Shown: positions 15,064 to 53,352 of the stretch, piece by piece
Layout of the letters: each line of letters opens with the position of its first letter
How positions within the stretch are numbered: the stretch's first letter is position 1
Assembly: GCF_001194135.2 (NCBI RefSeq)
Contig: NC_068991.1
Location: 18,255,332 to 18,311,995 of the forward strand
DNA length: 56,664 nt
Origin: Octopus bimaculoides
Taxonomy: Eukaryota
Reading direction: 5' to 3'
Position numbers and translations under genes: made by a program
The notes under the pieces: model-generated
What the model saw: only the letters and a program-made list of their open reading frames with translations
Database searches by the model: none
What the model was told of the DNA's origin: nothing

Positions 15064-17978
15064 AAAGGCGGTGAGTTGGCAGATGCAGAATGCGAGACAT
15101 TCATCTCTAACATTACTTACAAATTTGACCACTAAGGTAAACTTATTCAGAAACGCAATCTGCATAAAAACACAATAATGTTTATTTGAGTGAATAAATG
15201 TATTTGTATCAGAAATAATTAGGCGGTAAAGAAAAGTCACCATTAGCTCAATAACTACTATTATTTTAATAAATGAGTGAGATCATACTTGATGTTATAA
15301 CCTAAATAACTTGAATTAAAATTATATCTTCAGTGGTGAGGACAGTCAATATCTAAGCAACAAAAATTTATTAATTAAATAAATGGTCTTTCGTATCATG
15401 TACGTATAATAACGGACTACTCAATGAAAGGAAATAAATTATTTTCACTGTAAATCACATTCTTTATTTCGTATAATAGTGAAAATAATTCTAGATAAAC
15501 TCATGTGTGATGAGAAAAAAAAGGTCATGTGAAGCTCAATGAAGAGTTCGATATTTACTTGTGGCAAAACTCTATATCCCTTCTATTGTGTCCGTATGCA
15601 ACATTGTATCGTTTGGATATACATAATGTGTGAAAACTGTACGTGTTATGTTCCTTTTCATTTTATTTTCCGCCATTATACGTACATAATTCGAAAGATC
15701 ACAAATGAAATTAATCAAATATCAACTGCACAGGGATGTATGTATAATGTTTAGTAGTACGGAGACATGTCGCAGTCTGGAAAGATTTCGGCAATCAAAT
15801 AGCCAAATTGTGACTTCTGCAAAGGTTAGTGAGTATGAAGGTGGCGAGCTGGCAAAATGCTTAGCGGTATTTCTTCCAACTCTACAATGCGAGTTCAAAA
15901 TCCGCCGAGGTCGATTTTGTCTTTTATTCTTTCGGGGATTGATAAAATAAGTACCAGTTGAGCACTGTGGTCAATGTAATCGACTAATCCATCAGCCAAA
16001 ATTGCTTGTATTATGCCAAAGTTTGAAAAGATCTTAAATTAAAAAGAACGACTGTTGTAGGGATACACAAATATACCTGATATTTCGGCAAATACGGGAG
16101 ACAACTCGTGACAGGTTTCGACCTAACTGTTTCGCTGGTGGATTAATAATGAAAGAACCACTAACATGTACATTATTATATTCAAGTAAACGGGAAAAAG
16201 GAAACGTCAACTGCATAAAAAAGACAAAACTAAATAAATAACCAAGTTAGTGAGGATAGCTAGATGACAATTTACATCCGCCCCACTATATTCTGATTCC
16301 GAATTTCGCGAAGGACGATTTTAACTTTTGTCTGTGTTCGAGACGAAAGATAGTGTTTTCGCCGATGAGAGAATCTATTAATTCCCTTTATAACCATTAA
16401 TTTTGTTAGTTGTTAATGGTTAGCCCAAACTGAAGCTTGCCGAAAGGGCTTCCAAATGTGACCATCCTATCTTTTAAGATCGTATATGACTTCTTTATTT
16501 AACGTCTTCTGTTTTGTATTTTCTTAGTTGAAAACGTTGGGTGTGACATGAGGCTGATGCATCTACTATTTCTTGCAACTTAAGCGACCACGTAGGTTAC
16601 AACCTTCTCACGAGTTGACATGGTAAAGTGCCAAGCTAAGTGGTATATTTAGATGAGCTATTACTATCATAATTAAAAAATTCTGAACTATTAACTTTAT
16701 TTCTCATGTTCTTCTTTCACTCAATATCTCGGTCGGTGATTTATTCGATCGTCTTCAGGTGGTAAAATTACTACTCCTGTTCTAAAATCCTCTCACCTCC
16801 CCACTTCATTCTGATTTCGAATCTTACTCAAAGATATACAAGCGCACACACAAATATCGTAAAGGATAAATAGTTAATCTAATTTAAAATTAATAGACAC
16901 TCACACAAACGAGAGAGCGAGAGAGGGTGAAAAAGTGCAAGATAGAAAGAGAGGGGAAGAGAAAGAGATAGATAGATAAATAAAGAGTGAATAGATAGAT
17001 AGATAGATAGATAAATAAAGAGTGAAGCAGAGTACGTATACAGTTATGATACCTTGAAATGATCGCAAAATAGATCGATCGAAATGTACAAAAGAAAAGA
17101 CTGCGAATTGAGGGTTAATTCTCTAGAAACTTTTCGTTAATTTCACGGTATCTAAATGCGACCTTATCTTTTTGTGACTTTAATCCAGACACATACGATC
17201 TTATCCTTCAATACCCTAGAAATAGGTCGATAAAAATAATACCAGTAATATAAGAGGTCCTGCATATTCAGTTAGACTCCTACTTCTCTATATTAATTGG
17301 CCTTATGTCTAAAGATTAAATACTAATTCAACTATATACGAGGTTGTATATTTACATCTGTATTTATAAATATGTTTGATCCAGATGACATCGAATTAGG
17401 CTACAAACTAAGGGAAGATAAGTCATGCGTAAAACGTGGAGAAACCCTCGCCAAAGAAAACCATTCTCAGAGCTATAACCTCTATAAACACATAGGTGCG
17501 TGCGTACGAAAGATGAATACACACACACACACATACACACATACATAAATAAATACATACATACATAAATAAATACATACATACATATATATATANNNNN
17601 NNNNNNNNNNNNNNNNNNNNNNNNNNNNNNNNNNNNNNNNNNNNNNNNNNNNNNNNNNNNNNNNNNNNNNNNNNNNNNNNNNNNNNNNNNNNNNNNNNNN
17701 NNNNNNNNNNNNNNNNNNNNNNNNNNNNNNNNNNNNNNNNNNNNNNNNNNNNNNNNNNNNNNNNNNNNNNNNNNNNNNNNNNNNNNNNNNNNNNNNNNNN
17801 NNNNNNNNNNNNNNNNNNNNNNNNNNNNNNNNNNNNNNNNNNNNNNNNNNNNNNNNNNNNNNNNNNNNNNNNNNNNTGTGCGCGCGCACGAGTGTACACC
17901 TATATATGTATGTATGCATGCATGTATGTATTAACTGAAATTAAAACGGCATTGAGAACTGGCGACAACGTAGAGAGA

Positions 17979-18023
<45 letters not shown>

Positions 18024-18196
18024 CAGAGAGGCAGAGAAACAGACTGGGAAAAGAAAATAGAAATACACGACATTAGAGAACAGAAATAATAGAATACCAA
18101 GGGAAAAAAGGATAAGAAGATCTTTATTGAAAAAAAATCATTTTAAATCGGGGGAGACACATACAAGTTTTTATTAGAGGGGGGAATTAAGGACAT

Positions 18197-18232
18197 GGAA
18201 TTTCCCATGATGCTCTACTGCTACTGACGTCA
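18197..18232. promoter_or_regulatory. Putative WDR26 proximal promoter motifs: NF-kB-like site and palindromic CRE
   Basis: GGAATTTCCC at 18197-18206 (reverse complement GGGAAATTCC); TGACGTCA at 18225-18232. Confidence 0.4.
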
Positions 18233-18449
18233 TCGAGCAAAACAAATTTGGTCACCAACTTGTGTTGTGTTCGCACTGGTCGGAGCTTGTCTTCACTCAA
18301 ACAACACAAATAACAAGAGCAACAAGAAACCCCAATATAACAATCACCACCACAACAAAAACAACCAACACCATCATCACAATATACCAAACAACAACAA
18401 AGAAAAAAAAAACATAGTGGAAAAGGGGTCCGACTGATCAGCGATATTA

Positions 18450-18470
18450 ATGCTACAACAAATTACTTAA
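18450..18470 (+). promoter_or_regulatory. Candidate uORF (MLQQIT*) in the WDR26 leader
   Basis: ATG CTA CAA CAA ATT ACT TAA in weak context; ends 14 nt before the candidate CUG. Relevant only if the TSS is upstream. Confidence 0.45.
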
Positions 18471-18484
18471 GCAATCCGGCAATT

Positions 18485-18562
18485 CTGGCATCGTCTTCAG
18501 AATCAGAAGACGGTGGAGTTTCTCCCCCACCGCCCAAAAAGCAACGAGTCTCAGCCGCTAAC
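18485..18562 (+). CDS. WDR26: Putative CUG-initiated in-frame N-terminal extension of WDR26 (26 aa: LASSSESEDGGVSPPPPKKQRVSAAN)
   Basis: Frame is open from TAA 18338-18340 to the AUG with no in-frame ATG. CTG context is gcaATTCTGGca (A at -3, G at +4). The peptide resembles the recalled human non-AUG extension LASASSSSDSDTGGASPPPRKKPRASAA. Confidence 0.65.
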
Positions 18563-18765
18563 ATGCAGTCGAATGGCTGCCCTCAGCACAATGGAGAGAG
18601 CGAGGAAATAGCGTCTACTTCCCGACAGAACGGTTCTTGTTCTGCTACGGCGAATGGTGAGGTGGCCACACTAGAAGATAGACAACATCTTTTGAAAACC
18701 ATGTCCCAGGCGGATCAAGACGTAGTTCGATTAATCGGCCAGCATCTCCGTGGGCTCGGCTTGAA
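18563..18765 (+). CDS. WDR26: WDR26 coding exon 1 from the AUG (MQSNG...DVVRLIGQHLRGLGL; start of LisH)
   Basis: ATG at 18563 (aacATGc); donor AA|GTGAGT at 18765/18766, phase 2. The ORF-track stop at 18769 is intronic. Confidence 0.93.
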
Positions 18766-18919
18766 GTGAGTCTCTCTCCACTGTCTGAATGAAGAAAACA
18801 TTTTAGTTTTATATAGATTATGTATACACTCGTATACACACACACACACACAAATGCATATATATATATATATGTATTATGTATAGATACACATATTATG
18901 TATGTATACATATATTTAT

Positions 18920-18963
<44 letters not shown>

Positions 18964-19109
18964 GTATGTATACATATCTTTTATACGACTATATATATGT
19001 ATGTATGCATATATCTGAGCTATATATATGTATGTCTACGTATATCTGAACTATAAATGTATGCATACACATATATATATATATATAGACATATATCTCT
19101 ATTATATAA

Positions 19110-19145
<36 letters not shown>

Positions 19146-19246
19146 TGTGTGTGTGTGTGTGTGTACTCATTACACGCATGTATGGGAGAAATATATACAA
19201 TAGGTTGTTGATATGCCAGAAATCCCATTTCAGCAGCTCCCGTTCC

Positions 19247-20180: not shown

Positions 20181-20710
20181 TATACCCACAAATATATATA
20201 TACTAGGATACTACCTACCACCTCTATATATATATATATATATATATATNNNNNNNNNNNNNNNNNNNNNCTACTACCTATATATATATATATAAATAAG
20301 GATTCTATCTACCACCTATATATATATATATATATATATATAATTTAGTGGATTTTTTTAGTGTGTGTGTGTGTGCGTATTTTATATAATCCTCCCTTTT
20401 AAATTCGACTACAGCTGTTAATTTCTACGTAATGTCTGTTATGTGAAGCCAACTAGACCATATATAAATCACCTTTTATTTATATTCACAGATTTTGTGA
20501 GTGTATATATATATATCAGTTTATTTTAAAATTGGCTAGCAATAATGTACCATGTTTTAAAAAAAGAAAAACAGATCTTTCAACCTTTATTTCGAAATAC
20601 CTACGCTCAGCTAATAAATTGTGAATTTATCTTTCTCCATATAATTTTTTTTTAGAAAACCACTCCAAAACAAAAACATTATCCTTCATTAATATAATTT
20701 AAGAATATAT

Positions 20711-22421
20711 NNNNNNNNNNNNNNNNNNNNNNNNNNNNNNNNNNNNNNNNNNNNNNNNNNNNNNNNNNNNNNNNNNNNNNNNNNNNNNNNNNNNNNNNNN
20801 NNNNNNNNNNNNNNNNNNNNNNNNNNNNNNNNNNNNNNNNNNNNNNNNNNNNNNNNNNNNNNNNNNNNNNNNNNNNNNNNNNNNNNNNNNNNNNNNNNNN
20901 NNNNNNNNNNNNNNNNNNNNNNNNNNNNNNNNNNNNNNNNNNNNNNNNNNNNNNNNNNNNNNNNNNNNNNNNNNNNNNNNNNNNNNNNNNNNNNNNNNNN
21001 NNNNNNNNNNNNNNNNNNNNNNNNNNNNNNNNNNNNNNNNNNNNNNNNNNNNNNNNNNNNNNNNNNNNNNNNNNNNNNNNNNNNNNNNNNNNNNNNNNNN
21101 NNNNNNNNNNNNNNNNNNNNNNNNNNNNNNNNNNNNNNNNNNNNNNNNNNNNNNNNNNNNNNNNNNNNNNNNNNNNNNNNNNNNNNNNNNNNNNNNNNNN
21201 NNNNNNNNNNNNNNNNNNNNNNNNNNNNNNNNNNNNNNNNNNNNNNNNNNNNNNNNNNNNNNNNNNNNNNNNNNNNNNNNNNNNNNNNNNNNNNNNNNNN
21301 NNNNNNNNNNNNNNNNNNNNNNNNNNNNNNNNNNNNNNNNNNNNNNNNNNNNNNNNNNNNNNNNNNNNNNNNNNNNNNNNNNNNNNNNNNNNNNNNNNNN
21401 NNNNNNNNNNNNNNNNNNNNNNNNNNNNNNNNNNNNNNNNNNNNNNNNNNNNNNNNNNNNNNNNNNNNNNNNNNNNNNNNNNNNNNNNNNNNNNNNNNNN
21501 NNNNNNNNNNNNNNNNNNNNNNNNNNNNNNNNNNNNNNNNNNNNNNNNNNNNNNNNNNNNNNNNNNNNNNNNNNNNNNNNNNNNNNNNNNNNNNNNNNNN
21601 NNNNNNNNNNNNNNNNNNNNNNNNNNNNNATATAAACTTCATATTTTAATTCTGTATATGTATCATTATCTGTTCTCTCTCTCTCTCTCTCTTTTTTTTT
21701 TTTCTCCGTTTGTCTAAATTGGTTTGAGGTGTGTTTAGGGGAAGTGTGACAGTGATGATGGTAATGAGAATATATTCAAATGTTGATCTTTATACCTTTC
21801 TCTCTCTCTCTCTCTCTCGTGTGTGTTGGCATTATTTTCAGCTGGTGAGAGATGTCTCCACCTTCTGAATCGAAACCGAATCGCGTACATTGGCTCACCT
21901 AATCACTGGATCTTACTACTACTACTACTACTACTGCTAGAAAAGGTTGGCAGAAACTACAGATCATCGGAGAAAATATCTGCATTATTTTCGTTGTGCT
22001 ACTTTTACGTTGAGAGTTCGAATCTAGCGGAAGTCGGCTTTACCGTTCGTGTCCTTCTACAGTCGATAAAACAAAGTTCTACGGGGTTGATGGTAGTAGC
22101 TAACTCCTCACTCCCTCGAAATTGTTGGCTTTGTACCTCTAAATTCAGAAACTATAATAGTAATAATTATTATTAATGATTTTAATGCTATCAGAACAGT
22201 TGAGATCGAGATTAGCACTTGACTGACTGTCACTTTATTTTATCGATCCCTGTCGAAGGATGAAAGGCACACAATCAACTGCAGTAGGGTTTGAAATTAA
22301 TATCGGCAACACTCACAGACAGTAACAAAAAGACTGATCTTTGTGGTAATGCACTTACTAGGTTAGCTAATTGGCACATTTACCCCCTTCATGTCGGTTG
22401 GTCAGTACGTAGCGTGTCTAT

Positions 22422-22462: not shown

Positions 22463-23321
22463 NNNNNNNNNNNNNNNNNNNNNNNNNNNNNNNNNNNNNN
22501 NNNNNNNNNNNNNNNNNNNNNNNNNNNNNNNNNNNNNNNNNNNNNNNNNNNNNNNNNNNNNNNNNNNNNNNNNNNNNNNNNNNNNNNNNNNNNNNNNNNN
22601 NNNNNNNNNNNNNNNNNNNNNNNNNNNNNNNNNNNNNNNNNNNNNNNNNNNNNNNNNNNNNNNNNNNNNNNNNNNNNNNNNNNNNNNNNNNNNNNNNNNN
22701 NNNNNNNNNNNNNNNNNNNNNNNNNNNNNNNNNNNNNNNNNNNNNNNNNNNNNNNNNNNNNNNNNNNNNNNNNNNNNNNNNNNNNNNNNNNNNNNNNNNN
22801 NNNNNNNNNNNNNNNNNNNNNNNNNNNNNNNNNNNNNNNNNNNNNNNNNNNNNNNNNNNNNNNNNNNNNNNNNNNNNNNNNNNNNNNNNNNNNNNNNNNN
22901 NNNNNNNNNNNNNNNNNNNNNNNNNNNNNNNNNNNNNNNNNNNNNNNNNNNNNNNNNNNNNNNNNNNNNNNNNNNNNNNNNNNNNNNNNNNNNNNNNNNN
23001 NNNNNNNNNNNNNNNNNNNNNNNNNNNNNNNNNNNNNNNNNNNNNNNNNNNNNNNNNNNNNNNNNNNNNNNNNNNNNNNNNNNNNNNNNNNNNNNNNNNN
23101 NNNNNNNNNNNNNNNNNNNNNNNNNNNNNNNNNNNNNNNNNNNNNNNNNNNNNNNNNNNNNNNNNNNNNNNNNNNNNNNNNNNNNNNNNNNNNNNNNNNN
23201 NNNNNNNNNNNNNNNNNNNNNNNNNNNNNNNNNNNNNNNNNNNNNNNNNNNNNNNNNNNNNNNNNNNNNNNNNNNNNNNNNNNNNNNNNNNNNNNNNNNN
23301 NNNNNNNNNNNNNNNNNNNNN
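20711..23321. other. Two assembly gaps in WDR26 intron 1 (20711-21629 and 22463-23321)
   Basis: N runs; other gaps at 1603-1827, 3082-3091, 5373-5997, 6875-6884, 17596-17875, 20250-20270, 46006-46083 and 51365-51636. Confidence 0.98.
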
Positions 23322-37708: not shown

Positions 37709-37768
37709 GCTGACCATGATTTGAATGAATTGAAAATGTTGATTGAAGATAGCTGTCAGACAACTTTG
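37709..37768 (+). CDS. WDR26: WDR26 exon 3 (ADHDLNELKMLIEDSCQTTL)
   Basis: tttctag|GCT...TTG|gtaatg; 60 nt, phase 0/0; resembles human AENDLNELK. Confidence 0.88.
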
Positions 37769-38355
37769 GTAATGTTTAAAGGAAAAACATTTCTGAATTT
37801 CTTTCTATTTTGTATCTTTTAATTTGCATTTTGATTAACAGTATAGCTGGTAGTTTTTTAAATTTTTTTAATATTAAATGCAATAGTATGTAGGAACAGG
37901 TATGGTTAAAAATTTTGCTTCCCAACCATGTAATTTTGGGTACAGTCCTATTGCAGAGCACCATGGGCAATGTCTTCTACTATAACCTTTGGCCCACCAA
38001 AGCCTTGAGAGTGAATTTGGTGAGTGTTTGCATGAATGTGCACATGTGCATGTATTTATGTGTATGTTTGTGAGAGTTAGTTTTTAAATTCCTAATCTAC
38101 ATGTGCTCATTTGCTGAGTGTAAAGGAAAGGCTTGTTCATATGGTGTTTTGTTGTTTGTTTCCAGTTCTCCATGTAAATACATGTGGCTTGTTTGTTGTT
38201 CAGTGGTTGGTGAAAGGAAAGGCATCTAGCCATAAAAAAAAAACCTCTGCCCCAACATACCCTTGTCAGACCCATGCAAGCATGGAAAAGTAGACATTAA
38301 AATAATGACGATAATATTGATGCATTTAAGACTACATTGTTCAATGTGTTTTTAA

Positions 38356-38879: not shown

Positions 38880-39016
38880 AAGATGAAATTTCTTATTCTT
38901 GAACAGAAGTATCTTGAGTTCTTAGAAGAAGGCAAGAACTTGGATGCATTACAGTGTTTACGACATGAATTAACGCCGTTAAAATTTAATACTGAACGTG
39001 TGCATGAACTTAGTAC
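38880..39016 (+). CDS. WDR26: WDR26 exon 4 ([19 protein letters not shown]...HELS; CTLH region)
   Basis: tttcag|AAG...AC|gtaagt; 137 nt, phase 0/2. Confidence 0.96.
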
Positions 39017-39748
39017 GTAAGTAAACAATTTTTTATGTTTTATTTTTTTCTTCTTATGTTTGTTTGTTTCAGACAGGTAACTTTGAATGCAGGCTTTTTG
39101 TTCCTGTATAAGTGTAAACCAAAAAAGTATGCAGTATGTTTGTAAGTTGATTCAATCTCTCTTTCTCTCTCTCTATCTATCTCTGGATTTAACACTATTA
39201 CCTACACTTTGGGTGCCTTTTAGTGAAATTCTCTTTGTTCTAGGCTTCCATCTAAGAAGTTCCTCCTCCTACCAGTCTTTGACGACTATGCAAAAGGTCA
39301 TGACCTGACCTATTCTCTTCTGATTTCCCCTCTGTATACTAACCTGCCTGAGACAGCCTCTAGTTCTCTAATACATCCAGTTTTGAAACAATCTAAAAAT
39401 CTTGCATCAAAATTTCATGTTAATTCAAATTCCAAATACCAGCTTAATAATGATTGATATTTGGCTAAATTCTTCATTATTCTAAATATAAATTGAAACA
39501 AAAGCAGTGAATTTCAGTGGAAATATAACAAAAGGGTTAAACTGTCAAAAAAATATTGTAAATAATTATTGGCCATACCTTAACCACCTTGTGGAAAATG
39601 GACATAAAGCGGTTAAGTATCCTTGCTAAATAGATGTGAATCCACTCTTGTTAGAATTGCTCCAAGTTGCATTAGCTGAATCTTTATAAACTATTTTATT
39701 ATCTGCTTGATAAGGCAGTGGGGTTAATTGAACATGTTTGTGTGTGTG

Positions 39749-39804
<56 letters not shown>

Positions 39805-40262
39805 GAAGAGGGTTTGGGAGAAGGAGCAGGTCACTAAAAACAATTATTTTTATGAGATACAAAAAGAATACTATAACTTAAAATGTTAACCCCTCCCCCT
39901 GTTAACAACTGCTCACACCATTTAGTCAAGGAGGCTTTTCCTCTACCTTCCCCCAACTTTATTTTTCTTTTTATTCTTTTTCTTGCTTTGCAAATTTCTT
40001 GTTTATATTTTGTGACGTCTGGTACCCATATATGTATACATGTATATGTATGTATATATGCATATATATTCATGTTATAATGGTGGCAGCTGATGAAGGA
40101 AATTTTCTCTATGTGGCCTGTGTGTTTTCTGTACCTTGTTTATCATTTTGTCCATGTTTTTTTTTTGCAACGTCATGTACCCAGATATGCATCTATATAT
40201 ATACAGGTAGATGAAGGTATGTACATACATGTACATATATATGCATATACTCATATATTATT

Positions 40263-40308
<46 letters not shown>

Positions 40309-40596
40309 CACACACACTTGTACATGTCCAGAGGTATGAGATAAAGAGTACTCAATGCATGTTGAGTTTATTTATTTTGAAGAAGCTGATTAGTTTCTTG
40401 CTGTGTTTCACTGGTCAGTCAACAAAAATGGTAAATCTGGAAGAGATTAGCATTTAAGTTTAAGAAATTGTGTACGATGCTTATTGAAACCTGTTAATGC
40501 TTTGCTCTGCTCAACGTTTTACCTTTTTAAGGTTTTATATAAGAGTGAAGTGTACTGAATACAAAGGCATGCATGTGTCATGATTGTCTTTGTTGG

Positions 40597-40639
<43 letters not shown>

Positions 40640-40695
40640 GTGATATGCTAGAACCCGTCATCTATATGATATGTATTTTTTACTTTGTTGTCTAG

Positions 40696-40793
40696 GTATA
40701 TGATGTGTAATAATCCACAAGATTTAAGAGAAACATCCGATTGGGAAGGGAAAGGGATTGTTTCCAGACAAAAACTTATTGAAAAATTACAAT
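40696..40793 (+). CDS. WDR26: WDR26 exon 5 (YMMCNNPQDLRETSDWEGKG...KLQ)
   Basis: tctag|G...T|gtgagt; 98 nt, phase 2/1. Confidence 0.95.
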
Positions 40794-41710
40794 GTGAGTA
40801 GTCATTTTTTTTCATACGTTTTTAAAATGCTCTTTTAAAAACTGTGTTTACTTTCTTTTTAATCAGTGTTACAATGTTTTCAGACCTTATGTAGCAGGTA
40901 AAAATACTTAAATGTGATTCCTTAATCAAACCATATCTTAGAACAAAAAAAAAAAAAAAAGAAAATCTTTTTAAATTACATATTGCAAGCAAGCCAGGTC
41001 ACCACCATTGACTGGTTGCTGGTTAACCAACACCTTATAAATCTGTCTTTTGTCATTATTGTCACCTTCAGCTTTTAGAAAATATTTTTGCATAATAAAA
41101 CTAATCCCGCATAGGTGTACTACACCTATTTACATTCAAATTTCTGATAAACGTCTAAGTTGTACGATTTATTTCCCTTTGAAACTACAAAAAAATGCTA
41201 AAATCCAAAATAAGCTATCTTGTGCTTGAAGTTGCTCAATTTAAACACCTTTGCAAATAAACACCTCTCATGAATAGTCATAGGGTGTTTATAGCATGGC
41301 ATTGATCTTTACATTTGTTGCGTTGAATATCATTTTCACTTCTACTGATATCAGAAATGTTAATCTATGTTGTCTGTAACAACTTCCAATATTTTGAATG
41401 AGAAAAAATAGCCGAGCAAAAACAAAAAGAAAACTTTAGGTGCAACTCAGGAACTAATTAGTTTCAGTCGTATTGTGTGTCATTTTTGAAAAACAATTGT
41501 GTGACAAAAAGAAATCATTCAAATTAGCCATTATATAACAAAATTGCATACCAAATGTTACTGTTAATTGTAAATTGTACATCTATAGTGCAAGAACTAA
41601 CTAGGGTTGTAATATCAACATAAATTCATTATTTATTAATTGTATCTCTGACTGAAATTATCAGAATACACAGACACACACACTTACACAGTCACACATA
41701 ATTGTATATA

Positions 41711-41941
41711 CGACCATTTCGAGCGTGGCTGTTGCCAGTACCTCCTGACTGGCCTTCGTGCCAGTGGCATGTAAAAGCACCCACTACACTCGGAGTGGTT
41801 GGCGTTAGGAAGGGCATCCAGCTATAGAAACTCTGCCAAATCAGATTGGAGCCTGGTGTAGCTATCTGGTTTCACCAGTCCTCAGTCAAATCGTCCAACC
41901 CATGCTAGCATGGAAGACGGACGTTAAACGATGATGATGAC
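41711..41941 (+). mobile_element. Family C retroposon 3' end with (GAT)n tail
   Basis: GGCGTTAGGAAGGGCATCCAGC...CCAACCCATGCTAGCATGG..CGTTAAACGATGATGAT; further copies at 1381-1533 (+) and 50981-51165 (-). Confidence 0.85.
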
Positions 41942-42143
41942 AATTATTTCCAATACACACACACACATATCTGCTTTCCTTGATGTCTTTGACGTTGTGT
42001 GGATATATTACATAATTGTTTCAAAAGAATTGTATTAGTTAATTATTTCTTCAATATTCACTGTTTGTACATGCACATATGTATGTATGTATGTTAGCAC
42101 ATATATTCTGATATTTATTCTGGCAATTTGTTCATTTTACTAG

Positions 42144-42300
42144 CTTTTCTTCCACCCACTGTGATGCTACCCCCTCGTCGATTACAGACTTTACTTAGCC
42201 AGGCTGTAGAACTTCAAACAGATCAATGTTTGTACCACAATACCAAACTTGACAACAATCTTGATGCAGTCTCTCTCCTCATAGACCACACTTGTAATAG
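42144..42300 (+). CDS. WDR26: WDR26 exon 6 ([17 protein letters not shown]...DHTCN)
   Basis: tactag|CT...AG|gttggt; 157 nt, phase 1/2. Confidence 0.96.
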
Positions 42301-43016
42301 GTTGGTACATTTAACTGGACTTCATTTTGTTTCATTTTCTTAAACATTTCTTTGTTAATAATGCCTGTTGTTTGATATTTACATTGAATGCTTATACATA
42401 AAGGTGCACATGTATGAAGACGCATACACACACACACAAACTCACACTGGTGGGAGTGTGTGACTATATGAATGGCCCTATCATGAAATTCAATTGATTA
42501 TTTTCATTGATTGCTTTTTTTTTTTTTTTTTATTCATTTCAAATTTTCAAGTTCAATTTCCATTAATATTTATTTATTTAAAATGAAAATTCATTCCAAT
42601 TTCATTTCATTAAAAATCATTTGAATTTTCATGAATATGAAATATGAATCCGAAATACCAAACATTACCTCCCACTGCCATGCACATGACAAGAAAAAGC
42701 AAAACAAACTCCCACAAAGAAATCCTGGAAGTAAAAATCTAAACTAAAAGAAAGGAAATCAACTCCCCTGCTCAGAAGTTATTCTCCCACCTCCCTCTTC
42801 TTTGTCCTCCTGTCAAACCTTGAATTACACTTTTCATCAATAACAGTAATAGGAGTCTTGGTGATATTGATTTTTGATTGTTTTTCTTAGAAGCATTAGT
42901 CATGGTGTCTATCCCAGTTACATTTCAGTGACTAATGCCTTTTCTGCATTCATGAATACCTGCAAGTGTGTGTGAGGTTTAGGCATGTGTCTGTATGTAT
43001 GTATGTATGTAATGTA

Positions 43017-43059
<43 letters not shown>

Positions 43060-43198
43060 TTAAGGGATCAGCAAAATATTTGCTTCACCATATACCGAAG
43101 TTCAGAAAAATAGCAGCTAAAAAAGCTGAGAATCTCACAGATAGCATCACTTGTAACTCACAAAGGCAAAAACAAGAAGAAAGAACAATGAAAAACTG

Positions 43199-43502
43199 AA
43201 GGTGTGTGGTTTAGTAGTTAGGGTAGTTGGTTCATGATTGTAAGGTCGTGAGTTCAATTCCCGGCGACGCATTGTGTCCTTGAGTGAGACCTTATTTCAC
43301 GTCGTTCCAGTCCACTCAGCTGGCAAAAATGAGTAGTGCCTGTAATTAAGAGAGGGCCAACCTTGTTGCACTCTGTGATGCCGAGAACTACTTTAAGAGT
43401 ACATGTGTCTGTGGAGTATTCAGCCACTTGCATGTTAATTTAACAAGCAGGCTGTTCCGTTGATCAGATCAACTGGAACCCTTGTAATCGATGGAGTGCC
43501 AG

Positions 43503-43503
<1 letters not shown>
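43199..43503 (+). mobile_element. Diverged family A-related tRNA SINE
   Basis: A/B-box head (GAGTTCAATTCC) and shared tail ..CAACTGGAACCC..GGAGTGCC. Confidence 0.75.
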
Positions 43504-43538
<35 letters not shown>

Positions 43539-44682
43539 GTATATGTATATATGTATGTTTATTTGAACTGGCAGGCATTCCTTATGGTCTAGAAATGTTG
43601 CATTTATGAAAATCTTGTAATGCTAAGCCTATTTTTCCCATTGACATCTATGTTAGGAAATTATTTTACTTTATGGAATCTAGTGTTTGGACAAAAGTTT
43701 TATGAATCCAACTTTCCATAATGCGGGGATGTATTTTTCTCTCTCTCACTCTATATGTTATATTCACTTGTTTATCTATGAATCCTAATGTTTTGTCTAA
43801 GATTGTTTGTTTAATTAATGATTAATTCTTAAACATTTCTAGATGTTAATATGAGTATTTGTGTGTGTATCCATGTCTATACTTGGGTATGTCTATTTTA
43901 TGGTAGCTGTCAGCTATGTGAATTTGTGAATGCATCCTTGTCTCTGTTCTTATGAGTGGTTGCCCTACCTGCTAGAAATAGCAGCAAAATCTCCCTTGCA
44001 CTGCACCTCTTTGTCTTGAAAAGAAACAGCACACATTGAATAATGTAGTCAGTTTGCCCTATGTCTGACTGAAAGACCGGATGTTCATGGTTAGAAATCC
44101 TAGATCATAGATTTATCAATTCAGGACCAAGTTGGGACTGAAAATCCTCACCTGATCAGGGTATTAGATTAACAGTTCACAGATCTTTTGCCTCTATTCA
44201 GATTTCTAGAATGTATTTTGTTATAGGTATTGACTTGGCTGTGTGATTAAGCAACTTGTTTCTCAACTAGGTGGTCTTAGGTTCAGTTCCTCTGAATAGC
44301 ACCTTGTGCAAAGCCTCCTAGTATGACTCTGGGCCAACCAAAGCTTTGTGAGTGAATTTGGCATACAGAAACTGAAAGAAGCTCATTGTGTGTTTGTATA
44401 AACCCTTGTCTAAATATTGTGTGATGGCTGTAAACGAGCATCGGTGTTATAAAAGCAAAGTTGTTTGTTTCCAGTCTTCTGTGAAAAATGTGCAACTATG
44501 GAAAAACATTACCTTGCTTGGAAACAGATGACTGTTGGCAACAGGCTTCCAGCTGTAGAAAATCTGCTTCAAGTAATTGTCTGACCCATACAAGTATGGA
44601 AAGTGTGCATTAAATGATGATGATGATATGTATTTGGGCAGTACACTTAATTCTGCATGCAAAATAGAGAAAATTTCACCTA

Positions 44683-45048
44683 CTCTTTTACTTGTTTCAG
44701 TCATTTGACTGTGGCCATGTTGGAGCACTGCCTTTAGTCAAGCAAATCGACCCCCAGGACTTATTCTTTGTAAGCCTAGTACTTATTCTATCATTTTCTT
44801 TTGCCGAACCGCTAAGTTACGGGGACGTAAACACACCAGCATCGGTTGTCAAGCGATGTTGCGGGGACAAACACTGACAAACATATACACGCACATACAT
44901 ATATACGATGGGCTTTCAGTTTCCATCTACCAAATCCACTCAGAAGGCTTTGGTCAGCCTGAGGCTATAGAAGACACTTGCTCAAGGTGCCACGTGGAAC
45001 CATGTGGTTGGTAAGCAAGCTACTTACCACACAGCCGCTCCTACACCT
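44683..45048 (-). mobile_element. Family B SINE
   Basis: High similarity to 25751-26143. Confidence 0.88.
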
Positions 45049-45116
45049 AATTCATATAATTCTTTTTGTTTCTTTCATTATATATGTATTTTATTTATCT
45101 TATTTTTTATTTATAG

Positions 45117-45255
45117 GGATCAGTTTCCTTGTAATACTATTCAAATATTGAATGACCATTGTGATGAAGTATGGTTTTGTCGATTTTCTCCGGACGGCAC
45201 AAAATTAGCTACAGGTTCCAAGGATGGTACTCTCATTATCTGGGATGTTGATATG
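45117..45255 (+). CDS. WDR26: WDR26 exon 7 ([46 protein letters not shown]; first WD40)
   Basis: ttatag|G...ATG|gtaagt; 139 nt, phase 2/0. Confidence 0.97.
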
Positions 45256-45973
45256 GTAAGTTACAGCATTTTTGTATATCAATACAGAAGTCATGACATC
45301 CTGGTGGATAATGGTAACTGAAATGGCTGACTGGTTATATAATTGAAACATTGACTTATTGATCAGAGGTTTAAATCCACTTTGGTAGAATGCTTTATTT
45401 TGCAATACTTCTATTGTCTTCTGATCTGTTGGGAATAAATACCACATTTTAATGAATATTACCAGTGGTCTTTTTAACCTTTTTGATACCAACCTACCTG
45501 GCACCATCCATGCTACCGTGGTACCAGGCATTTACGTATAATGCTACAGTGGTAACTTCATTTACAATAACCATAAATTAACATTATTGTTATAGAAATG
45601 GTCATTCACATTATGTACAATACAAGTGACTCTGTATTCTCTCTGTCCTTTAACTCTTAATGTCGTCACTATGATGACGGCTACTATTTGGTTAGTCAGC
45701 ACACTTTTATTATCTCCCCTTTCTTCGAAATAACTAATGTAACACTCCCTTTTTTTATATATATATACTAACTCAAGGAGAATTTAATCGCTTGATTCTA
45801 AATTGGTCTACTGAATTTTCTCGTTGTTTCCTCCAAAATACAACTGTTTAATGTTTATGTGACTTGTTCTTCAATAGGAGTCATACTTATATTTGTATGA
45901 TGTAAATATTAATCAACTTTGTATACTTTGCATCATTGAGTGTATTCATCTTGTAAAATTTTGTACTATGTTG

Positions 45974-46005
<32 letters not shown>

Positions 46006-46255
46006 NNNNNNNNNNNNNNNNNNNNNNNNNNNNNNNNNNNNNNNNNNNNNNNNNNNNNNNNNNNNNNNNNNNNNNNNNNNNNNTTAACAAGAGTGTGTTT
46101 TTTCTGGTGTTATATTTATCTTTTCCTGAAGATGTGTAAAGGAATTTTGATTTATTAAGTCTCTTAATAAATTTTTTCTTTATACAGAAATATATATTGA
46201 AGATAAATATGTTCATTTAATATATATGTTTTTGCATCATAACTCCTTCTTATTA

Positions 46256-46291
<36 letters not shown>

Positions 46292-46499
46292 AAATAGATA
46301 AAGCTAAAAATAATAGTATGTAGAAATGATTTATTTCTTATCTCAAATTTTCTAAATTCTTATAATGTAAACAGTACATGCATGCATACATATTTTATGC
46401 ACACTTACACACATGTGCATACATACATGAACACCCATTTTAAATTTCGTCTTTCTCTAATTTGCTTATATTTTTTTTTTTTTTAATATTTTTAAACAG

Positions 46500-46640
46500 T
46501 ATACGTTTGAAGTATTGATGCGTAGAGCATATGAAGGTCACTCCTATGGTGTATCATATATAGCATGGCATCCAGATAGTAAATACATCATTGCTTGTGG
46601 TCCAGACGACTGTGCTGAAGTTTGGTTATGGAATGTTGAG
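46500..46640 (+). CDS. WDR26: WDR26 exon 8 (YTFEV...[15 protein letters not shown]...WLWNVE; WD40)
   Basis: aaacag|TAT...GAG|gtgagg; 141 nt, phase 0/0. Confidence 0.96.
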
Positions 46641-46689
46641 GTGAGGTGGTTTTACTGGTGTGTTGAATGTATTGAAATGTAGATTAGTC

Positions 46690-46982
46690 CTGGGGTTTTC
46701 AAACTTTTTGGCTTGCGGACCCCTTTATATTTCAGGCTTTACCTTAGGGACCCCCTTATAAACGCTTATGAAATTTATACATATTTGCTTAAAATATCAT
46801 ATATTTTTACATTTATTTATTTAACAGTATTTAACAAATAGGTTTATTGTCAATTAAAAGATTTCGATTAAAAAACATATATAAAATCAAATTGCCCATA
46901 AAAAGCATTTGCTGTCTACGGACCCCCTGTCTTGTCCTTGTGGACCCCCTGTGGTCCGCGGACCACAGTTTGAAAACCCCTG
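46690..46982. mobile_element. hAT (Charlie/Buster-type) MITE, 293 bp
   Basis: TIRs CTGGGGTTTTCAAACT / AGTTTGAAAACCCCTG (1 mismatch); perfect 8-bp TSD GATTAGTC at 46682-46689 and 46983-46990. Confidence 0.9.
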
Positions 46983-47356
46983 GATTAGTCAATGTTGTTG
47001 CTATTGTTGTTGATTAGTCTCTGGTTATTTTTGACTGGATTTAATTGACAAGAACACTTTTTGTTTTTGTGATCACTTTTTTTTTTTAAGAAGGCAGGGT
47101 GATTTGAGTGAAATTTGGCCAATATTTGTAGCAAATTGAGTAACCACATAGACTTGCTTGACTTGTGGATAAATTAGCATTGAGCTTGTTATTTGTAGGC
47201 ATTTGGAAATAGAAAATGATGAAGTTTATTAAGTGGAGAACCATGTAAACCACCACAATGTAAGATAAAGGGGAAACTTTATTCAGTATTTCTAGCTTAT
47301 TAACTTCTAATTGTGACAGTGGGGTGGAAATTGTTTTTCAGTGTTCTTTTATCATT

Positions 47357-47722
47357 TGCTTGTTTCAATCATTAGTCTGCAGCCATGCTAAGGCATCATC
47401 TTGAAGAATTCTTAGCTGAATTAATTAACCCCAGTACTTATTTTTTGTTAAGCCATCGATCCGTTTCGGTGAACTGCTATGTTATGGGGATGTAAACGCA
47501 CGAGTTGTCAAGTGGTCATGCAGGAGAAACACATACATGTATGGACACACACAAATATATATGATGGGCTTTTTTCAGTTTCCGTCTACCAAATCCACTC
47601 ACAAGGCTTTGGTTGGCCCAAGGCTATGGTAGAAGACATTTGCTCAAGGTGCCGTGCAGTGAGACTCAACCCGGAACCATGTGGTTGAGAAGGAAGCTTC
47701 TTGCTACTTAGCCATGCCTGCA
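47357..47722 (-). mobile_element. Family B SINE (diverged)
   Basis: CTACCAAATCCACTCACAAGGCTTTGG block and head. Confidence 0.8.
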
Positions 47723-48082
47723 CCTTGAAAATTCAAGTTTAAAATCCTTATTGTGTATGTTTGTGAGTACATATATATATATAACTGCTTCAACTTGTTC
47801 TATGTTGGAGGTGATACAAAGCTAAAAGTAACAACCTTTATCAATAATTACTCCTTTCATATTATTCCAAAAGTAAGTGATACCACAGTCATTGGTGTGG
47901 TTTCAATTTTCCCCTCTATTCACTCTCCTTAATAATTCATGCAAGTACTTGTGTCATTTGTCTTTCAGTCTTGTTATTATCCAGAACCTTACAGAGGTTT
48001 TATATAAGTTATTTCTTGATCCAGCTTTGTAACACTATCAAGATTAACATTTTCTACCCTTTTCTATTTTTGGTTTTTGTAG

Positions 48083-48202
48083 ACTAGTGAATTGAAAGCT
48101 AAAATGAGTCAATCTCCTGAAGATAGTTTAACCAGTGCTGCGTGGCATGCAGATGGCAAAGAATTTTTCACAGGAGGCACTAGAGGACAATTCTACCAAT
48201 GT
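48083..48202 (+). CDS. WDR26: WDR26 exon 9 ([21 protein letters not shown]...RGQFYQC)
   Basis: ttgtag|ACT...TGT|gtaagc; 120 nt, phase 0/0. Confidence 0.96.
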
Positions 48203-48659
48203 GTAAGCAAAGTTTTCTTCCCTCATTTTTGAAACATGTTATTGTTTTATATATATATATATTATAAATGGGAAGATACAGAGCTTTTAAGATGTGCTTA
48301 AGTCAGGATTTTTTGTCATTCAAATTCATTATAACACTGGTAATACCTCTCATGGCTATAATCTTTGATTTAATCTAACTTAGATATACACACACATTTG
48401 TAGGCCTAGACACAAATTTTTAAAGAAAATTAGCAGTTACTCATATATAGAATCCTGTCATCCCTATGCCACCAAAGTTTGTTCATGAGCAAGACCTTTG
48501 AATTGAATCAATACAGCTTGGCTACATTGTCATCCCAGGTATTGTTAAAACTCAGTGCTGGAACAGATACAGCAAATCATTCTTCAAGACCCTCTAACAT
48601 TATTCACCATTGGCATCATTGTTTAACATCCATGGATACTCTGAAAGCGTTGTCTTAGT

Positions 48660-49100
48660 ATTGGAACTGGCTAGGCAAATTTCGGAGAGCTATTACCTTT
48701 GTTGGTAACAAAGGACCTCTTCTGTAGAGTGAATGGCAAATTGTATGATGCTTGTGTATGAACAGCTATGCTACATGGTAGTGAAACATGGTCTAATGAC
48801 TGCAGAGGACATGCAAAAGCTTGAAAGAAATGAATGTGCAATATCAATGTACATGTACGACAAAGTGTAAATGTGTTAAGAGAAAAATTGGGAATAAGAG
48901 GCATCGATTATAGTGTGCAAGAAAGGAGACTGTGCTGGGATCATTTTGTGATGTAGCTGCATAAAAAAGTGCTGATCTCTAAAAGTGGAAGGTACCTGTA
49001 GAAGAGGGGGACTGAGAAAGACTTGAGATATAGTGTGAAAAATGATCTGATGTTGTGCCTCACAGAGATGACAATGAATTGAGACTTAAAGGCCATAAAG
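48660..49100 (+). pseudogene. Decayed RTE-clade LINE C-terminal fragment
   Basis: KFRELLPLLVTK..GKLYDACV.TAMLHGSETW. Confidence 0.75.
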
Positions 49101-49933
49101 GCATGCTGTTAATGTCCATGTCCCTGCACACAATTTGTCCTTAACAAGCCTCTCCTCAACAAACGATCTTCCCAACACCTTATTCTGACTTGGTTCATCA
49201 CTCGCTGTATTTTCCTCCCTTTGTATCCTTGCAAACCTTACCTGCACAAAATGTCTCTCTCTCAAATCTCTTTCTCTCAACGTATCCTAACACCCATTCC
49301 CCCTACTTGTGTCCACTCACTACAGCTATACATATGGAAACAGCTACCTGTAATCAACTTAATTTACATGTGTAAGTAGGTGACAAATATATGAATGTTC
49401 ATTTTTTGCTTTTCTACAACACCAGGACTTATCTTAGACTTGATATATGAATTTTAATTTGGCTTTACATCTGATTTTTTTCATGCCAACATGGGTTAGG
49501 CAAGTATATTTATCAAGGCATTGTTTTACAGCTGAATGTTCTTACTGTTGCTAACCCTTACCTGTTTATATGACTTAAGCGCTACAGTGTGTTCTCACTC
49601 AGTGAAGTATTACTCTGGGAAAGTGTCAAATTGTGTTTTTTTTCTTACATCATTTCAACTTCTGTGGTACACAAACTGTTTATCATGTAGGCTCCTTCTT
49701 TCACATTACAGCATATTCAATTATAAAAAGTACATAACAGGTAAAACCACATTCACAATATGCATCAACATTCGTTACATCCTCTCATGAAGTTTATCCA
49801 TGCAATAATACTAATTTTATTTCCATAAGTAGACTACCTTTATTTTTATCAAATCCAATTTCAAGCAGATTGCCATAAGGAAATTACTACAGGACTTGAA
49901 AGAGTTAAATTCCCTTGTTGTTTGATCTTGCAG

Positions 49934-50079
49934 GATCAAGATGGCAATTTTTTTGATAATTGGGAAGGTGTTCGAGTCCAGTGCCTTGCATGTCAACACG
50001 ATGGGAAAGCTGTTTTAGCTGCTGACACCCACAATAGAATAAGAGGCTACAATTTTGAAGATAAATCAGATTTTCATAT
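49934..50079 (+). CDS. WDR26: WDR26 exon 10 ([18 protein letters not shown]...[13 protein letters not shown]..)
   Basis: ttgcag|GAT...AT|gtaagt; 146 nt, phase 0/2. Confidence 0.96.
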
Positions 50080-51636
50080 GTAAGTATTTCTCATGTGTTG
50101 TTACTTTTATTATTTCTTGGAGCAAATATTGTTTAATGGGTAAAGGTGGTGAAGGAACACTGTGACAGCAAATCTACTCTTTGATATCTGGTGGACCATA
50201 GTGGATGCATGCCACCCAGTTCTGAGCAGATGTTTGCAAATTTTCAGTAACACTTTGCTGGAGTAGTATTCAGTGGAATTTGGTGCCTACCTAATTAGTC
50301 TTTGCTGAGTCATGGTCAAGACGCAGAATGCTGCAAGAAACTGATTTTGACAGTTGTGTTGGACAACCCTGTAATAAGCTGTTCACGGAGAGGGATGCTA
50401 TAACTATGAACTTAGTTGATATACCATGTTAGTTTGTTGCTAACTTGTCAGCTATCTGTTACAAATAGCAGCAGACTGCAGGATGTTCCAAGTTGTGTGA
50501 CCTAAAGACAGCAAACAATGCTGAAGAAGGACTCACACAAAAGGGACACAATACACAAGTAGTTCAGATTTCTTGGCTAAGGTGCTTGCCAAGAGGCTGG
50601 CACCTATTGTTGACAATTTAAATCAGAGGTGTGCAAAATTTTGTGAACCCAGGCCCGTCTCCTCTGGTAAATATATCCATGACAACCTCTACCTCATATA
50701 TCTCACTTCAAGGTGTCTTTGATCAAGTTAGATCAGTGAAGTGTATGGCAAGATCAACTACTATCATCACTTGGTTGTTGTCTGAGAAAAAGCAGCAGGA
50801 TTCTGCAGGGAAGGTATTACTGTTGTTTAGCCCCAAATCCTATTGATATGTGGTTGAACTAACAATCCAGATTCTGTTGACCTATGGAATAACTAACATT
50901 TATGTTATTGCTGTTTGTCCCCAAATTTATTTGAACTATGGTCAAAGATGTTCCAGCAATGATCCTCTGATATTTTATTCATCATCATCATCATCGTCGT
51001 TTAACGTCCGCTTTCCATGCTAGCATGGGTTAGACGATTTGACTGAGGACTGGTGAACCAGATGGCTGCACCAGGCTCCAATCTGGTTTGGCAGAGTTTC
51101 TACAGCTGGATGCCCTTCCTAACGCCAAACACTCCGAGAGTGTAGTAGGTGCTTTTACGTGCCTCCTAGCTATAATGTATCTAAGAGTATAATATTCAAT
51201 GTGTTTTTTTTTTTAAGAAACAGATGTGAGAGAAATTTGGTTTTTATTTTTAGCAGATCAAGTTACTCATGCATAAGTGTGTGAAATGATATTGATGGTT
51301 GTAAAATACTTGATAAAGTGAATAAAAAAGCATCATTAAATTAATTTTTACTTCTTGTATTCTTNNNNNNNNNNNNNNNNNNNNNNNNNNNNNNNNNNNN
51401 NNNNNNNNNNNNNNNNNNNNNNNNNNNNNNNNNNNNNNNNNNNNNNNNNNNNNNNNNNNNNNNNNNNNNNNNNNNNNNNNNNNNNNNNNNNNNNNNNNNN
51501 NNNNNNNNNNNNNNNNNNNNNNNNNNNNNNNNNNNNNNNNNNNNNNNNNNNNNNNNNNNNNNNNNNNNNNNNNNNNNNNNNNNNNNNNNNNNNNNNNNNN
51601 NNNNNNNNNNNNNNNNNNNNNNNNNNNNNNNNNNNN

Positions 51637-51912
51637 AAGGCTCCACGAGGCTCCGGCAGGGGATGGTGGCGAACCCTGCTGTACTCTTCCACCACAACTT
51701 TCTCTCACTCTTACTTCCTGTTTCTGTTGTGCCTGTAATTCAAAGGGTCAGCCTTGTCACACTGTGTCACGCTGAATATCCCCGAGAACTATGTTAAGGG
51801 TACATGTGTCTGTGGAGTGCTCAGCCACTTGCACGTTAATTTCATGAGCAGGCTGTTCCGTTGATCGGATCAACTGGAACCCTCGATGCCGTAAGCGACG
51901 GAGTGCCAACAA
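51637..51912 (+). mobile_element. Family A SINE with its 5' end hidden in a gap
   Basis: Body and (CAA)n tail match the other copies. Confidence 0.85.
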
Positions 51913-52160
51913 CAACAACCAACCACCAAGACCTCCCTGAATCCGTTGATATAAATTTCATGTTTTAAAGTGATCTCAAAACCTATTAAAATTCCATTTT
52001 AATTTGTTTCAAGCACCACTTTAATATTGACAAAATAATTTTACTATGTTTTTCATGGCTTTCAAAATTTATTGAAACAAAGGCAGCATATTTCAACAGT
52101 AATACAGTAACAAAAGGATTTTAAATGTGTTTATTTTTTTTCATTTTACTTTCTCCACAG

Positions 52161-52239
52161 ATTACAAGAAGATCATCCTGTAATGTCTTTCACTTTAGAT
52201 GAAACTGGAAAATTAGCTTTATTAAATGTGGCCACTCAG
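52161..52239 (+). CDS. WDR26: WDR26 exon 11 (LQEDHPVMSFTLDETGKLALLNVATQ)
   Basis: ccacag|A...CAG|gtaaac; 79 nt, phase 2/0. Confidence 0.96.
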
Positions 52240-52707
52240 GTAAACATTCCAATTACTCCGGTATTTGAATTATTATTTGAAGGTATGCTTAAATGTGCTA
52301 CATTTGGAATCGATATCCTTGATGTTAGGTCACAACTAGGACTTTCAAACAATCATTGCTGTTCCTAATAGAATAAATTTCTGTATTATTGCCATTACTC
52401 CAATCTCATTAAAGGACTTACTAAGTCTGTTGATAATGGTACCTAGGGTACCTATAACTACAGGAATTACATTTGCAGAAAATCTCCAGACTTTGCAATT
52501 TCCTTGCTAAGTCTTGGTACTTTTCTTTTTTGTTTTTTATTTTTTTGATTGCTGTATCCATAACAGCCAACATGGGCACATCTATGATGATAATGCACTC
52601 CTATGATGATAATGCACTCCTTTCACATCTTCTCTTGGATAATAATATCTAGTTGTCTTGCTTAAAACTCATGATCAGTTTGTACAGTAAAGTTGTATTG
52701 TTATTAA

Positions 52708-52923
52708 CCCTTTAGCATTCAGCTTACTCTGTCAAATGTAATACTTATTTATTCACAAATTTCTAAATCGATCCTGTATTATCTTGTAGCTTTGAAATTT
52801 TGAAGATGTGATTATTTTAAGAATGACATTGCAGGATAGGTGTGAGAGGTTGGACCTGGTCTATTTGAACATAAAGCAGGTTGAATATTTGGGCTGGATA
52901 TGACCTGTTTAAATAGTAGAGAG
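52708..52923. mobile_element. piggyBac-like MITE
   Basis: TTAA|CCCTTTAGCATT ... degenerate right TIR|TTAA; second copy at 38356-38571. Confidence 0.65.
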
Positions 52924-53299: not shown

Positions 53300-53352
53300 G
53301 TAATTTTAACTCTGTACATTATGTGCTGTTGTATAAACTTTTTACTCTCTCT

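Follow-up and report, generated by a model that had tools for sequence, protein, structure and literature searches.

The gene WDR26 of Octopus bimaculoides, which lies in a 56,664-nucleotide stretch of contig NC_068991.1 (positions 18,255,332 to 18,311,995 of the forward strand; hereafter the window), carries upstream of its AUG a 26-codon extension that opens with a CUG and contains a compact conserved module, ASSSESEDGGVSPPPPKKQRV. We conclude that this extension is very probably translated and under selection, and that it is almost certainly functional. The best overall explanation that we can offer, to which we give about an even chance of being right, is a CUG-started extension of WDR26 whose core binds importin-alpha and whose activity is tuned by phosphorylation. 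The parts of the extension, with the nearest upstream stop, are as follows.

18338 to 18340, + strand: TAA, the first in-frame stop upstream of the CTG, with no in-frame ATG between the two
18485 to 18487, + strand: CTG, the proposed non-AUG start of a long WDR26 isoform, in the context gcaattCTGg, with A at -3 and G at +4
18488 to 18550, + strand: the conserved module ASSSESEDGGVSPPPPKKQRV, which recurs in about 60 WDR26 exon-1 open reading frames (ORFs)
18491 to 18511, + strand: SSSESED, an acidic serine cluster with CK2-type S-x-x-E/D sites, two of its serines being invariant in 19 sequences
18512 to 18517, + strand: GG, a hinge between the acidic and the proline/basic parts, invariant in 19 sequences (among 41 sequences the first G is invariant and the second is kept in at least 90%)
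18521 to 18535, + strand: SPPPP, a proline-directed serine (S-P, 18521-18526) followed by a proline run in which PP is invariant
18536 to 18547, + strand: KKQR, a K(K/R)X(K/R) core and candidate monopartite classical nuclear localization signal (NLS; positions P2-P5), kept in 52 of 53 distinct versions
18551 to 18562, + strand: SAAN, a linker up to the AUG, whose S-A-A part is also found in vertebrates (RASAAEG...)

The 21 residues translated from 18488-18550 (+) share their frame with the downstream WDR26 ATG at 18563, 26 codons from the CTG, and are encoded by GCA TCG TCT TCA GAA TCA GAA GAC GGT GGA GTT TCT CCC CCA CCG CCC AAA AAG CAA CGA GTC. An earlier note on this sequence had described S-x-x-E/D sites, one S-P, and KKQR in this stretch, and all of these are present. 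The extreme N-terminal position of the extension and its S/E/G/P-rich composition suggest that it is disordered. When the 25 residues of the extension were shuffled, 0.6% of the shuffled versions contained a K[KR]x[KR] motif, and 0.013% showed all elements in order (two or more CK2-type sites, an SP, and then the basic motif); the conservation seen in multiple species is a stronger argument against chance than these shuffles.

Conservation of the proposed CUG start and selection on the peptide

Relatives of the window were found by a protein search with the exon-1 translation, the matches being ORF-caller products from many eukaryotic contigs, with Dreissena among the named ones. These matches keep (A)(S/I)LASSSESEDGGVSPPPxKKQR(V/L)S upstream of MQ(A/S/T)NG, and their similarity ends just before the L. 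At the DNA level we compared 13 loci, namely the window and twelve fetched loci (L001-L012), of which L001 is near-identical to the window. Twelve of the 13 have CTG as the start codon, flanked by A at -3 and G at +4, and the codons around it read GCM-A(G/T)Y-CTG-GCM in L001-L008, ATA CTG GCC in L010 and L011, and ACT CTG GCC in the vertebrate L012. The remaining locus, L009, is intron-less and transcript-like and reads TGA GTC GTG GCC, where the in-frame TGA that precedes its GTG by two codons forces a non-AUG start. Between the upstream stop and the start codon there is no in-frame ATG in the window, L001-L010, or L012, and L011 alone has one, 10 codons upstream; the first downstream in-frame ATG lies 26-53 codons from the start codon in the related loci. 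No similarity was seen upstream of the CTG in the invertebrate loci, where the near-cognate codon is thus the 5' limit of conservation.

A second near-cognate start codon, ATT at 18482-18484 (+), directly abuts the CTG. The codon before the CTG is ATT in the window, L001, L004, and L007, ATA in L010 and L011, and AGC or AGT elsewhere, and the AUU start reported for Drosophila WDR26 by Ivanov et al. may correspond to this ATT position.

For the 21-codon stretch that runs from the CTG through the arginine, with the near-identical L001 set aside, the proportion of synonymous differences (pS) was 0.35-0.66 and that of non-synonymous differences (pN) 0.07-0.23, placing synonymous differences near saturation and leaving non-synonymous ones few. 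Serine codons alternate between TCN and AGY across loci, indels in the extension are multiples of three, and no stops occur in it. The low pN relative to pS, together with the TCN/AGY switches, argues for a translated peptide and not for a conserved RNA or DNA element. The extension, which had been taken for coding sequence when the window was first read, holds up as a real and selected one that begins at a conserved CUG.

Breadth and specificity of the module

We built a hidden Markov model (HMM) from 19 module sequences and searched it against 1.84 billion representative proteins, which gave 47 matches at E <= 1e-3; all but one were WDR26 exon-1-like, the exception being a bacterial repeat protein. 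The module profile gave 2 matches in a word-indexed protein search. About 60 WDR26 exon-1 ORFs carry the module, including those of fish, other vertebrates, and a wasp, and the named carriers comprise a gene model of Trichogramma brassicae (Hymenoptera) along with some fishes and other vertebrates. With both protein searches pooled at an HMM score of at least 30, a LisH signature follows downstream in the same ORF in 57 of 64 module-bearing ORFs, and, judged by these searches, the module is specific to WDR26.

An alignment of 41 sequences shows no variation at one G, PP, and one K, and at least 90% of these sequences retain SS, the second G, and R. Retention of KKxR, on which the NLS proposal of the earlier note had been made to depend, was borne out across the distinct versions, RKKRH being the single departure from K[KR]x[KR]. 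All 53 versions have at least one S/T-x-x-D/E site and 40 have at least two. Only 38 of the 53 have an [ST]P in the 8 residues that precede the basic core, with S-P replaced in the other versions by A-P, V-P, N-P, or C-P. Since vertebrates and insects share the start codon, the Kozak context, and the key residues of the module, it is very unlikely to be inert.

Candidate nuclear localization signal

The most plausible job of the module is nuclear import, and we find it an evenly balanced question whether its core acts as an importin-dependent NLS. The P2-P5 consensus for importin-alpha is K(K/R)X(K/R) (PMC5570423), and KKQR fits this monopartite consensus with a lysine at P2, as had been suggested from the window. 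The signals of c-Myc (A-K-R-V-K), Ku80 (A-K-K-L-K), and dUTPase (S-K-R-A-R) have the same x-K-(K/R)-x-(K/R) pattern, preceded by proline, as the core here (PMC5570423 Table 2), and the resemblance of the core to these solved major-site cargos is a motif match only. The dUTPase sequence ISPSKRARP, in which an S-P adjoins the NLS, is close to the SPPPHKRARL of some orthologues.

Human WDR26 has a working internal NLS, GSSLKKKKRLS at aa 111-121, which adjoins the LisH domain (Napoli et al. 2020, PMC7561725); its deletion alters localization and function, and the protein shuttles between nucleus and cytoplasm with an outcome that differs between the two pools (PMC7561725). Like the candidate core described here, it is a basic motif in the probably disordered N-terminal region of the same protein, but it sits inside the AUG-initiated form, next to LisH. 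In the window, no KKKKR counterpart was found just before LisH (18680-18720, +), where the sequence reads ...EDRQHLLKTMSQADQD..., and the invertebrate exon-1 ORFs from the exon-1 search mostly have no LisH-adjacent basic run. Of the 661 WDR26 positions, 512 were recovered from the window, and KKQR is the sole K[KR]x[KR] among them, with none in the downstream exons. The earlier note had proposed that the choice of start codon could decide whether WDR26, and the CTLH ligase built on it, goes to the nucleus or stays cytoplasmic. With no other K[KR]x[KR] among the recovered positions and no KKKKR counterpart, the idea that this choice decides whether WDR26 has an NLS is coherent in this lineage; it does not carry over whole to vertebrates, where the AUG form has its own KKKKR NLS and start choice is therefore not an all-or-none nuclear switch.

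The order of elements also invites comparison with the simian virus 40 (SV40) large T antigen, in which CK2 sites at S111/S112 precede a basic cluster at 127-131 and phosphorylation speeds import about 50-fold (PMC3022542). In the window, 13-15 residues separate the CK2-type serines from the first lysine, a match at the level of sequence that sustains the parallel in layout drawn by the earlier note (PMC3022542). The likeness to this 'CcN' arrangement extends to the order of the elements, a roughly similar spacing, and an [ST]-P-P before the basic run (PMC3022542, PMC7616709). The differences are that S-P is not universal here, that phospho-regulation here is a prediction from sequence, and that KKQR is weaker than the KKKRK of the SV40 NLS (PKKKRKV), with no homology between the two. 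An inhibitory effect on import is also possible for serines directly before an NLS, as Swi6 shows (PMC3022542). By analogy, CK2-type phosphorylation may tune the candidate NLS, which we suggest only tentatively. A CDK-type switch, which had been part of the same proposal, did not survive as a general feature, because S-P occurs in only 38 of the 53 versions and the wasp-like group has A-P or V-P instead.

Several points weigh against an import signal tuned by phosphorylation and started at the CUG. In vertebrates, the module is not needed for nuclear entry, which the KKKKR NLS already provides, and yet it is equally conserved there, so import alone may not be its whole function. By its sequence, the window's P-K-K-Q-R, with three basic residues, would be weaker than the common R-K-K-x-R, and about 28% of versions lack the S-P site. 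The phosphoserines of SV40 neither contact importin-alpha nor raise affinity for it in crystal and binding studies (PMC3022542), which casts doubt on the mechanism of the CcN analogy itself. The adjacent ATT at 18482 is also a near-cognate start, and the case for CUG use in this species comes from conservation. We found no published test of import driven by the peptide in any species and no phosphorylation data for the extension, which the reference proteomes used in phosphoproteomics omit.

Relation to the vertebrate extension

An extension of WDR26 initiated at ACG or CUG has been described in all vertebrates, with a western blot band about 10 kDa larger, and an AUU-initiated extension of Drosophila WDR26 was judged to be independent of it (Ivanov et al. 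2011, PMC3105428); a module or an NLS within the extension was not discussed there (PMC3105428). In human, mass spectrometry revealed the 5'-leader peptide ASAAEGVGEPGASAGR (Zhu et al. 2018, PMC5834625); 24 codons before it lies a CUG in strong Kozak context, and another 8 codons before that an ACG (PMC5834625). A 2022 survey still lists the WDR26 extension as unannotated (PMC9789052). Our literature search found no paper on the module, on its presence beyond vertebrates and flies, or on an NLS within it.

We searched for vertebrate ORFs with the human N-terminus joined to the peptide ASAAEGVGEPGASAGR and matched Aldrovandia, Polypterus, a sawshark WDR26-like protein, and further contigs. These ORFs read TLASASSSSDSDTGGASPPPRKK(H/A)R-ASAAEGAGEPGAS, or in a longer form ...TTAALGEETLASASSSSDSDTGGASPPPRKK(H/A)R-ASAAEGAGEPGAS..., such that the human peptide starts right after the KKxR of the module and the L plus 23 module residues account for the 24 codons. 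In L012, a CTG stands at the homologous codon and ACC ACG GCC eight codons upstream, both starts having A at -3 and G at +4. The two extensions are thus alike in belonging to the same gene, in having a CUG at the homologous codon before A-S in the same Kozak context, and in their first approximately 20 residues, LAS..SS.[DE]S[DE].GG.SPPP.KK.R followed by S/A-A-A. They differ in that vertebrates have an extra ACG start 8 codons upstream of the CUG and approximately 70 more residues between the module and MQANG, for a total of approximately 92-100 codons versus 26 here. Vertebrates also conserve approximately 8-10 residues upstream of the CUG (TTAALGEET) back to the ACG (L012 535-561; P0028, P0029, P0074, P0075). 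These upstream residues and the approximately 70 that follow the module suggest that the vertebrate extension consists of an ancestral module with lineage-specific additions.

A 'WDR26-like' model of the sawshark Pristiophorus japonicus (P0047) has the module, as TLASSSDSEPGGASSPPPRKKQRVSAA, inside a protein annotated from an upstream AUG, so ordinary AUG initiation may have replaced the non-AUG start of the extension in some paralogues or lineages.

Judged by the alignment, the window CUG is positionally homologous to the vertebrate CUG, which argues against independent origins. The comparison covered the window and the invertebrate and vertebrate loci, with no named Drosophila sequence among them, and on that basis we argue for a single ancient origin of the extension, which would revise the published view of separate origins in different animal lineages.

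Alternative explanations

The extension may be translated while its module works as a docking or regulatory motif that has nothing to do with importin, which we regard as the main alternative, possible but rather unlikely. Under this heading would fall a contact with a CTLH subunit or partner, an acidic/basic latch, a phosphodegron, and a pseudo-substrate for the WDR26 propeller. Conservation covers the whole unit, including GG, PP, and the acidic cluster, and so exceeds what a minimal NLS needs, and vertebrates retain the module though their AUG form has its own NLS. The WDR26 propeller does bind basic motifs that double as NLSs, but the degron it recognizes is G/K-R-X-aromatic and an SV40 NLS replacement abolished recognition (PMC7616709), and no partner for the module is known. 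We rejected at the motif level a pseudo-substrate or degron mimic of the NMNAT1, HBP1, or YPEL5 type, as no W, Y, or F is conserved after the basic residues. A beta-TrCP-like [DE]-[DE/pS]-G-x-x-S fails where the second position is N, P, K, or Q, and an SH3 class II PxxPx+ is not conserved, only PP being invariant.

The other two explanations bear on the start and on translation itself, and we consider both improbable. Long introns and assembly gaps leave room for a coding peptide reached from an AUG in an unrecognized upstream spliced exon, but the point where conservation begins (...ccggcaattCTGgca) has no AG acceptor, and conservation extends to the CTG itself and its Kozak context. Of the transcript-like sequences, L009 has its TGA two codons before the GTG and L010 has 44 open codons upstream without an ATG, and the human data indicate CUG and ACG (PMC3105428, PMC5834625). 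It is more improbable still that the leader is untranslated and conserved as a regulatory RNA or DNA element, with the peptide incidental. A predicted CGGUGG/CCACCG stem is invariant in 9 loci, as such an element might require, but substitutions are codon-like, with pN well below pS and TCN/AGY switches, indels come in threes without stops, the stem shows no covariation, its fold z-score is -1.37, a synonymous-site test gave p = 0.49, and a peptide from the human extension was found by mass spectrometry (PMC5834625). For want of covariation, and on the same z-score and synonymous-site test, we rejected a 6-bp start-enhancing hairpin between CGGUGG (18511-18516) and CCACCG (18527-18532), 24 nt after the CUG; the stem is probably a by-product of the GGN and CCN codons for Gly-Gly and Pro-Pro.

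Gene context and upstream region

The remaining features of the locus are as follows.

18193 to 18255, + strand: promoter-like block shared with L001 and near-identical to it, ACATGGAATTTCCCATGATGCT...CACTGACGTCATC.AGCAAAACAAATTTGGTCAC
18450 to 18470, + strand: upstream open reading frame (uORF) of six codons, MLQQIT and a stop, out of frame and ending 17 nt before the CTG
18563 to 18765, + strand: AUG-initiated part of WDR26 exon 1 (MQSNGCPQHNGES..., from the MQSNG start to LisH ...DQDVVRLIGQHLRGLGL), in the context gctaacATGc
38880 to 54487, + strand: downstream WDR26 exons (CTLH/CRA and WD40 propeller), found by tblastn at 55-86% identity to human WDR26
38880-39014, 40685-40792, 42137-42301, ~45100-45252, and 46503-46643, + strand: individual WDR26 exons by tblastn
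~48080-48202, ~49900-50071, 52162-52239, 53170-53298, and 54332-54487, + strand: further WDR26 exons by tblastn

Exon 1 ends at a GTGAGT donor at 18766, and its MQ(A/S/T)NG start is kept in most orthologues and agrees with the annotated human start. The tblastn query was the human WDR26 sequence, and the recovery of exon 1 and ten further exons at 55-86% identity identifies the gene as the WDR26 orthologue. The exon for the end of LisH and the start of CTLH (NQTVDLLMQESGC...) was not found in the intron 1 region (18766-38880), where a fragment ADHDLNELKMLIEDSCQTT lies near 37709-37777. The window has ten runs of N, with assembly gaps at 20250-20270, 20711-21629, and 22463-23321, and the missing NQTVDLLMQESGC part probably falls in such a gap. 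A Pfam search of exon 1 alone gave only a sub-threshold LisH match, because an intron splits the domain. Rfam returned no match in the window, and no ORF of at least 130 codons was found there other than artifacts of N runs and repeats. A scan for bacterial promoters and terminators returned nothing in the window; its models are not applicable to a eukaryote. Microsatellites of the (AG)n, (AT)n, and (AC)n types are very dense across the window, for example at 17960-18020 and 18830-19160.

The block at 18193-18255 holds a cAMP response element (CRE)-like TGACGTCA (18225-18232) and AGCAAAACAAATTTGGTCAC (18236-18255), and its GGTCAC-containing element recurs in a third species, where it appears translated as 'SKTNLVT' (P0002-P0005). 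The block is probably the core promoter, which would place the start of the leader roughly 230 nt before the CTG. Leader length between the block and the CTG varies, with an A/C-rich insertion in the window. The uORF stands at the same place in L001, as MIQQIT and a stop; L004 and L007 carry short uORFs unrelated to it, which stop 16 and 8 nt short of the CTG, respectively, and no uORF is present in five other loci. The six-codon uORF might influence start choice through re-initiation.

Proposed mechanism and implications

We suggest that a fraction of scanning ribosomes would initiate at CUG 18485, in its optimal Kozak context, to give a long isoform, (Met)-ASSSESEDGGVSPPPPKKQRVSAAN-MQSNG..., and that the remaining ribosomes would pass the CUG and start at AUG 18563 to give a short one. 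The core would then bind the importin-alpha major site as a monopartite NLS of the c-Myc/Ku80/dUTPase type, and the long isoform, with the CTLH complexes built on it, would enter the nucleus more efficiently. An acidophilic CK2-type kinase would phosphorylate the upstream serines and thereby tune import, for which the expected extension phosphopeptides would be acetyl-ASSSESEDGGVSPPPPK here and ...ASASSSSDSDTGGASPPPR in human.

The extension itself is already known for vertebrates, and leaky scanning past a CUG that adds a localization signal is a well-known mechanism. High-molecular-weight FGF2 is a CUG-initiated long isoform that gains a nuclear signal. Long isoforms of the FGF2 type resemble the one proposed here in that ribosomes leak past a near-cognate start and only the longer isoform has the signal, but the gene and the signal are different, and for WDR26 a difference in localization is a hypothesis. 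The principle that a non-AUG long isoform can gain a localization signal was stated in the vertebrate study (PMC3105428).

Giant CTLH E3 assemblies are built by the WDR26 subunit, which also brings in their nuclear substrates. Haploinsufficiency of WDR26 causes Skraban-Deardorff syndrome. The earlier note stated that nuclear substrates such as NMNAT1 and HBP1 are targets of WDR26-containing CTLH complexes, and both are indeed ubiquitylated by WDR26-CTLH (PMC7616709). The WDR26 constructs in two functional studies were AUG-initiated forms (PMC7616709, PMC7561725), and a layer of control in the extension would have been missed because such constructs and the reference proteomes use these forms. 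Even if the NLS reading is wrong, the module is a compact conserved motif now defined for mutagenesis. Should it prove to be an import signal, CTLH activity in the nucleus would be tied to how efficiently non-AUG initiation occurs. More speculatively, and with considerable doubt on our part, the module may be an ancestral import signal, shared at least by vertebrates and insects and probably bilaterian-wide, that can be tuned by phosphorylation and sets the nuclear share of WDR26-CTLH; if this is true, the stringency of start-codon selection (eIF1/eIF5 balance, stress) and CK2-type signaling would together control the turnover of nuclear substrates such as NMNAT1 and HBP1.

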